From: Sminthopsis crassicaudata
Lineage: Eukaryota
Assembly: GCF_048593235.1 (NCBI RefSeq)
Contig: NC_133621.1
Coordinates: 231,467,238 to 231,531,237, forward strand
Length of the DNA stretch: 64,000 nt
Direction: 5' to 3'
A program made the position numbers and the translations under genes. The notes beneath the pieces are model-generated. The model saw only the letters and a list, made by a program, of their open reading frames with translations, was not told where the DNA came from and searched no databases. Shown here one piece after another: positions 35,401 through 38,400 of this stretch. How positions within the stretch are numbered: position 1 is the first letter of the stretch; each line of letters starts with the position of its first letter.

Positions 35401-38400
35401 ATCTCAATCTTATTCCCTTCCAGGAGTCACACCAAAACCTGGCTGATCAATGAAAGGTGGCTCATCCTGACTGTGGATCTGTACCTTGACCTGAGCTTCA
35501 AAGGAAGTTTAATCTGTAATAGTAATATTGGAAAGAGTGCTTATAAAAGAGAAGGTCCTTTTGCTATATTAGGCAGAATTGGAAGGGTGCAAGAGACAGA
35601 TCTAGAAATAGGATTGGGAAGGGAAAAGAGCCACATGTAAGTCTGTGCTATTTATTATTGGGGAAGGAAGTATAGACAATAGAGTCTAGTTAGTGGGGGA
35701 AATATATATTAGTCATATGTTTGTTGAATGGGAGTACTATTGATTAAGTGAATGTAGTATATTGAGGAGTTGTGTCCAGAAGCAATTGAGAAGGAGACTA
35801 CAGAGAATTAGAATATAAGGGCCAGAGGAAAGCTATGGGCCTTCAGAGAGTAGTTGGAGAAGAAGCTTTGAGGTAGTCAGTGAGGGAAATATCCTATAAA
35901 TCCTTCTAGGTGCAGTCAGTGGGGAGAGGGAAGAGAAAATTAGGGCTGGGGCAGACCTGGCATGTGCACCATGCGGCAATTGCAGTTTTCCACTAGATAA
36001 CGTGTTTCACAATCAATTCGACAGGCTGTGATGCTGTATGAGTCGAAGAAATCTGAGTCCATGGTAACAGCTTTACAAGTACCCCAGGGTGGAGGCAGGT
36101 AGATGAGCTGTAGGGAAAATGGGGAAACCATGGCTAATGGAGGGAAGTCACACCAAAGGCCTCCTAACTAATCTTGATGGGTTTTCCAAGTCAAGTATTT
36201 TTCCTTCATTTGGTCATCCCCCTAAACCATGAATCTTTCTTTACTAATTTCCCATGGCTTATATGGCTAGCTTCCATTCCAAATGCTTGGCCAAAGTACA
36301 CCCCCCTTGTCTCCTTTACCCGGTTTCTTCCTCCAACCAGACTTCTATTTTTTCTCCACTTGCTAGTTCTCTTTTCCAAGTCCCAGATCCCAACCAATAA
36401 ACTGTTTTCTAATGTGAGGCTTACCCGTTGCTCCTGGCAAGCCACAAAGGTCTGGAACCCAGGAGCTACACCAAAGCCTAGCTGGTCAATGAAAGGTGGC
36501 TCATCCTGACTGTGGATCTGCACCTTGATCCCAGCCTCAAAGGAAGTTTCATCTGTAACAGTAATATCAGGAAGAGTGCTTACAAAAGGAAGGGTCCTTC
36601 TGATATGACTGACTTCCTGATAGGAGTTTGCTCCCACCCTTCTATATCCTGGGAATCGTTTTCATTAATATTTTGACACTGGGAGTGATGGCTAGAATGC
36701 TTATAAGGGAAGAGAGGTGGAGGGGAAATGTGACTACTTGGATAGAATAAGGGTCAAGACCTCCAATTTTTTCTTGGAATCAAACATCCATTGGCTCTAA
36801 AAAGACCTCTACTTATCACCCTCATCTTCTTTTACTCATCTATGATTCTCTCTCTCTCTCTTTCCCCCCTTTCTCTTTCTTTCTCTCTCTTTTCTCTTTT
36901 TCTCTCTCCCTTTCTCCCTCCCTCTCTCTCCCCCTGTCTGTACCAAGGTCCCTGAGAGCAGATGGCAGGCAGCCTGAGAGAAGATGAAGTTATTTATAGA
37001 GCTGAGTGGTGGTTCCTGATAGAAAATGATGGCTGGTTACCTTGGAGAGGAACTGAGCCAGGATGGAAAAAGAGGAGAGAAAGAAGGGACAGATAAGCAA
37101 GCAGACACTGGGCATCAAAGAAATAAAAACACAGAAAGACATACAAAGTGAAAAGGAAGTTCCCTACTCTGGATACTATAATCCCAACTGGGACAGGTGA
37201 TTTCCATTTGGGGTTGTAATCTGGGGAAGGCCTAATATTCAGGGCTTAGATTTTAGGAATTGCTAAATGCTATGATAAAGGATGACTGGGAAGATCGTAA
37301 TGGTAATAGCAGTTGAATGCCCATACCCGTCTCTCCCCAGACCGGCAGGTACTCATCCTGTTGTATGTCCAGCATTATCTCTAGCCCGTTGCCTGTCCCA
37401 CCCTTCATAGTCTTGAGCAGTGGCCGCCCATCCTGGCCTGCGTTGAATGTGTAGCATTTTCCATAGCGTGTAAAGACCTGGTGAAAAACAGATAATACCT
37501 GAGCCTGAGACCCTTCCCCGCTAAAATCTTCTTGTCCTCCAATACTAAGACAAATTATCTTGGATTGCCCAGACTCATGATCTTTAAGACTATTTTACAC
37601 TTCTGGACCTAGTCTCCTAACTATATACTGAACCCTCTTGCCCATACTCACAACACAGAATACTCCTGCTCCATATACTGCTATTCCCTCTGGAATAAAG
37701 TTCCCTTCAAGCCCCAGGCCTTCAACCTCAAATCATGTCCCTCTCATAATTCCACAACAGCTAAACTTTCTGTTCTCTTCACATTATCAACTTCTTAATG
37801 TACTTCATTAGTTATAGCACAAATCAAGTTTATCACCTTATCCCTCCCTATACTATTATACCTATCATTGTTTCTTGGGCACTAGTGGTCCAAACAGCAG
37901 GCACACATACCATGTACTATATCAATATGCCAGTCACAATCTATTGATAATCAAAGCTATCAATGCTTTTGGCCCAAATTCTACTTCTTCAGTAAAAAGA
38001 GGTCTTCTTAGCTAGCCCATGTGCTATTTCTGTCAAGAAACTCCCCTTGTTTTTATGTTTCTTTCATTCCAGAAAGAGGTAGGGACAGAAACAGAATCAA
38101 TGTGCTGAGCTTGGTCTAGGTTTACCTGAATACCCCCTTTTGATAATTGGTACTTCAGCCCTCCCCAACTACCACCTGGAGTACTAAGTACCACTAGTCA
38201 AGGAACACTTGAAAAGTCATTTTCATAGAGAGCCCAGAAGTCACAAATAGAAAGACCTTCAACCTATAGTTGGCTCTCTCAATGTTTATTCCATGACCCG
38301 CACTAATCATTTCTTCTGATTATCTCAAGAGAGAAGAAGCATGGTCTGAGATTCAAACGCCACCTCTAATGTTTACTAGCTATGTGATCATGGGCAAATT

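Follow-up and report, generated by a model that had tools for sequence, protein, structure and literature searches.

Does the partial second copy of exon 5 that lies in intron 6 of ASIC1 in the dunnart Sminthopsis crassicaudata act as a poison exon, or is it an inert relic? The question arises in a window of 64,000 nt (the whole stretch of DNA analysed here: contig NC_133621.1 of assembly GCF_048593235.1, positions 231,467,238 to 231,531,237 of the forward strand), in which ASIC1 is read on the minus strand. A sequence-only reading of this window had described the copy as a candidate poison micro-exon, the inclusion of which would bring in an immediate stop codon. Our analysis favours another answer, to which we assign a probability of about 0.8: the element is the neutral relic of a single templated insertion of ~150 nt, and not a selected poison exon. 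Positions are those of the window, and the features are collected in Table 1.

The copy and its source form an ungapped direct repeat, in which 35420-35567 aligns with 36459-36606 over 148 nt at 86% identity (blastn, E=2e-44); this bears out the earlier pairing of 35421-35566 with 36460-36605, and the copy is ~14% diverged from its source. When 34.5-37.5 kb was compared with the whole window at a blastn word size of 7, nothing else significant was found besides this repeat, only low-complexity runs. Over the 146 nt of 35421-35566 there are 21 mismatches, 11 of them in the 93 exon-derived nt, as had been counted by hand, and 10 in 53 intron-derived nt, for which the hand count had given 9 in 48. 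The template lies upstream in the same gene and in the same orientation, with a start-to-start spacing of 1039 nt, and exon mapping confirms that the copy sits out of order between exons 6 and 7, separated by exon 6 from the parent exon 5. The donor of the parent exon is absent from the copy. With 93 of 128 nt, no donor and an intervening exon, the element is not a whole-exon tandem duplication or one member of a mutually exclusive pair.

The acceptor of the copy (...attacag/AT, where the slash marks the splice boundary; AG at 35515-35514, first 'exonic' base 35513) is preceded by an AG-free zone of 24 nt, equal to that of the parent; a parent-like zone had been claimed, although at ~26 nt. 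Together with a donor-like AAG/GTACAG, at which the putative exon would end at 35485, this acceptor delimits the 29-nt cassette previously described. Exon 6 and the exon that precedes exon 5 both end in phase 1, and thus exon 6 spliced to the dunnart copy would read D-stop (TAA at 35511-35509), in agreement with the immediate stop that had been predicted. This TAA would be codon 2 of the spliced-in copy with five coding exons downstream, and would thereby lie further ahead of the last exon junction than the ~50 nt used to recognise a premature stop. The 29 residues after the stop of the copy still match PDB ASIC1 (E~1e-10).

To place the insert among marsupials, orthologous loci were reached by a word search with the frame of ASIC1b exon 1b (41716-42672, region 82-298), followed by protein-id look-up; the 90% protein cluster of the matches lists eleven marsupial species. 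The DNA comparison covered two devil assemblies (L001 and L002), Antechinus flavipes (L003), Dromiciops (L004), koala (L005), and the dunnart window. Devil (L001, 26842-26989) and Antechinus (L003, 28655-28799) have the insert at the orthologous position of intron 6, and devil intron 6 is identical between the two devil assemblies. Koala and Dromiciops have an empty site: their flanks are contiguous save for 17 nt (GGATGAGAGAAAGATGG in koala), where the dasyurids have 148-150 nt, and the dunnart copy matches only the parent exon in the koala and Dromiciops loci. The source segment is intact in all five species. Read from these filled and empty sites, the element is a true insertion on the dasyurid stem. 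An assembly artefact, which the sequence-only reading had also thought improbable, was rejected, as three species carry the insert, in a total of four assemblies, and its sequence differs from the source by 14%.

As the insert is common to dunnart, devil, and Antechinus and the site is empty in koala and Dromiciops, it is older than crown Dasyuridae (about 21-29 Myr). The Dasyurinae-Sminthopsinae split was placed at 20.6-28.6 Myr in six analyses, and at 24.9 and 29.3 Myr in earlier studies tabulated in the same paper (PMC5715987). By the same presence and absence of sequence, the insertion postdates the divergence from Diprotodontia; of the nodes dated in that paper, Peramelemorphia-Dasyuromorphia, at 47.6-64.4 Myr, comes nearest (PMC5715987). 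The duplication, the dating of which had been suggested as a check, is thereby bracketed. Within this bracket, the copies keep the outgroup state at two sites that have since changed in the dasyurid parents, and have the derived dasyurid state at one; with the ten substitutions in 148 nt that all copies share (see below), these states would place the event in the early to middle part of the dasyurid stem, a rough placement from few sites.

The junctions of the insert, as interpreted across diverged sequences, bear marks of how it may have arisen. At the right junction, source (…CCTGG/G) and target (…ATGG/GG) share TGG/GG, i.e., 2-3 nt of microhomology, and at the left junction two nucleotides (AT, 35569-35568) match neither source nor target. 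These two are the first of the inserted block and could be filler or the product of slippage. At the insertion site, 17 target nt were lost, and alignment of filled and empty sites revealed neither a target-site duplication nor a poly(A) tract at the insert. Taken together, these marks favour, as the probable mechanism, either end-joining repair in which the break was patched from a template or a replication template switch, which would leave the same traces. A second alteration lies 23 nt upstream of the insert (35592/35593, minus strand), where 21 nt (CATTCCCATTTGATTATCCTC in koala) are gone in all three dasyurids and kept in koala and Dromiciops. This 21-nt gap is flanked by CTC microhomology and may stem, together with the insertion, from one complex repair event.

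A processed retrocopy was considered and rejected: ~55 nt of intron are present, and poly(A) and target-site duplication are absent. A mature mRNA is excluded as the template, since the copied stretch crosses an intron-exon boundary. The sequence-only reading had gone further and called the element a DNA-level duplication; DNA-level copying is likely but unproven, as copying from unspliced pre-mRNA would yield an identical insert. Among described classes of insertion, the element most resembles the class 2 templated sequence insertions (Onozawa et al., reviewed in PMC5110952): it shares with them a short copy-and-paste insert with an intact donor locus, the filled versus empty site, the lack of target-site duplication and poly(A), a microdeletion, microhomology, and possibly two non-templated junction nucleotides. 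Unlike those insertions, whose templates are distant and thought to be RNA-derived, the ASIC1 insert has a template only 1 kb away (1039 nt upstream) in the same gene and orientation, and a replication template switch fits it equally well.

The spacing of 1039 nt would also suit one unit of a tandem duplication, running from exon 5 through part of intron 6 and mostly deleted later. We regard such an origin, or an artefact of assembly, as close to negligible: no residual similarity is found outside the 148 nt, even at word size 7, the koala and Dromiciops flanks are contiguous apart from the 17 nt, and the occurrence of a 14% diverged insert in four assemblies of three species rules out an artefact.

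The subsequent history of the insert can be read from its rate of change. Between dunnart and devil, the copy differs at 13/148 sites (8.8%), the intron at 145/2305 (6.3%), and exons with splice sites at 8/806; between dunnart and Antechinus the respective values are 17/146 (11.6%), 157/2256 (7.0%), and 12/806, and between devil and Antechinus 9/146 (6.2%), 111/2256 (4.9%), and 8/806. The copy is thus never slower than the intron (Fisher p 0.23, 0.046, and 0.44, in the same order), and exons with splice sites diverge by 1.0-1.5% among dasyurids. The three dasyurids do not differ in the 93 nt of the parent exon that were copied. Variation is equal in the two parts of the copy, with 8 of ~55 columns variable in the intron-derived part and 13 of 93 in the exon-derived part. 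The exon-derived changes comprise 5 synonymous, 5 missense (affecting 4 residues), and 1 nonsense, a tally given earlier and confirmed here; because the 42 residues of the parent match PDB ASIC1 exactly, all four residue changes and the stop fall on the copy. The impression that this mixture looks like neutral decay is upheld by the divergence of 6-12% in the copy, set beside 5-7% in the intron and 1-1.5% in exons.

Placed on the species tree, the substitutions of the copy number 10 on the stem, 9 in dunnart only, 2 on the devil-Antechinus stem, 2 in devil only, and 8 plus a 2-nt deletion in Antechinus only. The three dasyurid copies form one clade (support 100/99), and gene conversion between copy and parent finds no support. 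At one column (column 63; 36567 in the parent and 35528 in the copy, minus strand), dunnart parent and copy both have T, and all other parents and copies have C. This C>T pattern, which is the sole hint of gene conversion, may be a change that occurred in parallel or the trace of conversion over a very short tract.

The two features that make the dunnart copy resemble a poison exon are confined to the dunnart. GAA>TAA (column 80) is found in the dunnart copy only, every parent exon and the two other copies (devil and Antechinus) having GAA, and the G>A change at position +3 of the donor (column 109) is likewise restricted to the dunnart copy. The devil copy has GAA and AAG/GTGCAG, i.e., the ancestral exon sequence; the Antechinus copy has GAA and AAGATGCAG (AAGATG), in which the GT is destroyed, plus the 2-nt deletion. 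No donor-like site above -1 was found in the rest of the Antechinus intron with a rough splice-site matrix. Read from exon 6, the Antechinus copy is open to its end and the devil copy to just beyond. Of the three signals whose conservation in other marsupials had been raised, the AG is present in both devil and Antechinus, the TAA in neither, and the GT in devil, having been lost in Antechinus; exon, stop, and splice sites are not conserved together among related dasyurids. On this comparison of sequences, the copies in devil and Antechinus, together with the neutral rate, refute a conserved or selected poison exon, and the earlier proposal of a poison micro-exon, as a selected element, is not supported.

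What could still be entertained is an exon born recently. In one form, an insert that had long been inert would have become a 29-nt poison micro-exon in the dunnart lineage only, through the recent changes GAA>TAA and G>A at +3; spliced in some neurons, it would lower ASIC1a and ASIC1b through nonsense-mediated decay (NMD). We consider this very unlikely. It is exceedingly unlikely that a regulated poison micro-exon arose recently in the dunnart (Sminthopsinae) lineage and tunes the levels of both ASIC1a and ASIC1b, although the immediate stop and the A at donor +3 supplied by two dunnart-specific substitutions and the position downstream of both alternative first exons could be cited for it. 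The stop is absent in devil and Antechinus and the GT in Antechinus; the copy has not diverged more slowly than intron; the change at +3 hardly shifts the donor score, and the parent exon has the same site unused; and both changes are among about nine random dunnart-specific ones in 148 nt.

The splice signals were scored with the same rough matrix. The acceptor of the copy scores 3.71 and that of the parent 3.44, the ten real ASIC1 acceptors average 6.9, and the exon-7 acceptor reaches 8.34, far above the copy. AAG/GTACAG scores 0.44 as a donor, and the unused AAG/GTGCAG inside the parent exon 0.31; the ten real ASIC1 donors average 3.46, and the lowest of them, at 0.17, is that of exon 6 itself. 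Because the parent exon carries a near-equal AAG/GTGCAG at the homologous position, no donor was 'created' by GTG>GTA, contrary to what had been supposed. Across 26.6 kb of ASIC1 intron, acceptor-like sites that are at least as good number 73 and donor-like ones 136, and they form 59 pseudo-exon pairs of 10-250 nt. Splice signals alone do not single out the copy; its only distinction is an acceptor descended from a working one.

These scores bear on the possibility that the dunnart copy is sometimes spliced as unregulated noise, through its acceptor and AAG/GTACAG (29 nt) or another weak GT, with the TAA leading to NMD and no selected role. Although the acceptor scores like that of the functional parent (3.71 vs 3.44), SMARCD1 employs an identical 9-mer as a donor, alternative splicing already takes place in the region of intron 6 (some annotated isoforms are without exon 7), and a TAA in codon 2 with five downstream exons predicts decay, we judge such splicing unlikely. 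Exon definition would be difficult for an exon of 29 nt whose donor is weak and whose tract is A-rich, exon 7 further downstream has a much stronger acceptor (8.34 against 3.71), and the copy is not apparent in the annotated dunnart protein isoforms examined.

The retained acceptor admits one further role, namely that of a decoy: the pseudo-exon would engage splicing factors without being included, and so slow the removal of intron 6 or favour the skipping of exon 7. Retention of the acceptor in three dasyurids would fit, as would the weak donor of exon 6 and the short, skippable exon 7. Wallaby and opossum isoforms, judged by length, also skip exon 7, both species standing outside the insert comparison, and the intron-derived part shows no reduced divergence (8/~55 vs 13/93 columns), which makes a decoy highly improbable.

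Several points weigh against a neutral relic. The comparison of copy and intron rates is built on about 148 sites, and the acceptor AG and its tract are kept in all three dasyurids after >20 Myr. The splice matrix is rough, being made from consensus frequencies, and serves for relative comparison within the window only. Moreover, the AAG/GTACAG 9-mer works as a donor in SMARCD1, and the donor of exon 6 scores equally low. A second occurrence of the 9-mer (AAGGTACAG) lies at 26664; there, a 36/36 match to SMARCD1 residues 142-177 stops right before the GT (exon end 26662), so that its description as a real SMARCD1 donor was correct. From this use of the 9-mer and the low-scoring exon-6 donor it follows that a weak score alone does not preclude use.

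For the neutral relic that we prefer, the following course of events is proposed. A break or a replication stall would have occurred in ASIC1 intron 6 in the dasyurid stem lineage, and its repair would have copied ~148 nt from 1 kb upstream in the gene, comprising the end of the preceding intron and the first 93 nt of exon 5, with the loss of 17 target nt. Having an acceptor and lacking the donor of its parent, the copy would not have been recognised as an exon, and would have been spliced little or not at all. It would then have drifted like intron sequence, and the TAA and GTG>GTA of the dunnart would be two of about nine random lineage-specific substitutions. We infer both the repair mechanism and the absent (or negligible) splicing of the copy from sequence.

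Among known systems, SCN8A exon 18N/18A (PMC3809569) also provides a copy of an ion-channel exon with an in-frame stop that would truncate the channel. Exon 18N, however, is complete with both splice sites, adjoins its twin and is conserved, and its use is mutually exclusive and regulated by tissue, whereas the ASIC1 copy has 93/128 nt without a donor, an exon between itself and its parent, a stop in one lineage, and neutral evolution. By analogy, SCN8A 18N would be the closest functional counterpart of the poison-exon idea, and templated break-repair insertion the closest for origin. Conserved poison exons such as SCN1A 20N (PMC7790302) share with the dunnart copy a predicted premature stop far upstream of the last junction, but they are strongly conserved and their regulated inclusion is documented, and the ASIC1 copy is not conserved. 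Like intronic pseudo-exons, the copy has acceptor- and donor-like sites at exon-like spacing, and is one of about 59 equal-or-better pairs; unlike them, its acceptor descends from a real working acceptor and not from chance sequence. In the literature, 'ASIC1' and 'poison exon' were found together only in an epilepsy review.

Table 1. Positions in the window of the insert, its source, and the ASIC1 exons (a slash marks a splice boundary).
Feature	Position	Strand	Remarks and basis
Inserted block, ASIC1 intron 6	35420..35569	minus	150 nt; repeat plus filled and empty sites across marsupials
Source segment (end of preceding intron and start of exon 5)	36459..36606	minus	blastn repeat
Intron-derived part of copy (pyrimidine tract and acceptor AG, 35515-35514)	35514..35567	minus	alignment
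Exon-derived part of copy (first 93/128 nt of exon 5)	35421..35513	minus	alignment
In-frame TAA, read from exon 6	35509..35511	minus	alignment column 80
AAG/GTACAG donor-like 9-mer (cassette end 35485)	35479..35487	minus	alignment columns 107, 109
ASIC1 1a first exon	ends 61053	minus	local motif mapping
ASIC1 exon 2	59883-59688	minus	local motif mapping
ASIC1b first exon	ends 41779	minus	local motif mapping
ASIC1 exon before exon 5	37477-37327	minus	ends phase 1; local motif mapping
ASIC1 exon 5 (DETSFEAG…CQEQR)	36425..36552	minus	128 nt; 42/42 residues identical to PDB ASIC1
ASIC1 exon 6	35957..36107	minus	151 nt; ends phase 1; donor CAG/GTCTGC; also matches ASIC1
ASIC1 exon 7	35261..35317	minus	57 nt; motif mapping and isoform alignment
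ASIC1 coding exons after exon 7	34526-34373, 34041-33950, 33413-33334, 33180-33076	minus	local motif mapping
ASIC1 last coding exon	32446 to stop at 32345	minus	local motif mapping

The insert lies downstream of both alternative first exons (1a and 1b) of ASIC1. Exon 1b encodes 218 residues that are 100% identical to Sminthopsis crassicaudata XP_074126521.1, with identities of 96.8% in devil and 89% in Antechinus. The ASIC1b first-exon frame (41716-42672, minus strand) is open for 81 codons upstream of MPIQIF; the Antechinus and koala models start 88 and 72 residues upstream of MPIQIF, respectively, and those of dunnart, devil, and others at MPIQIF. A Glu-rich run differs in length between species. 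Exon 7 (19 aa) is skipped in frame in the annotated isoforms dunnart X1 and Antechinus X2 (alignment), and wallaby X2 (537 aa) and opossum X2 (540 aa) are both 19 aa shorter, which suggests that exon 7 is skipped there too. The weak exon-6 donor CAG/GTCTGC, upstream of this skippable exon, is conserved in 5/5 species compared. In exon 6 (36070-36060 region), marsupial ASIC1 and chicken PDB chains are without the DL found in longer PDB chains (…TMDSD-LD-FFDS…). Elsewhere in the window, long (CA/GT)n microsatellites at ~62100, ~51600, and ~40150 translate in minus frames as THTH… or CVCV… runs, and there are three runs of N (47984-48130, 53030-53283, and 56863-57062).

If regulated inclusion in the dunnart were true, the locus would be a rare case in which the steps of the birth of a poison exon could be ordered on a tree, and would represent a dated birth from a templated insertion. 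As a neutral relic, the ASIC1 insert would offer a clean and dated example of a short templated insertion, by which a working acceptor and part of a coding exon were placed in a neighbouring intron of a brain ion-channel gene, with both filled and empty sites documented and >20 Myr of neutral drift thereafter. In the dasyurids, it would constitute a small natural experiment in which an intron tolerates a genuine acceptor whose donor is missing.

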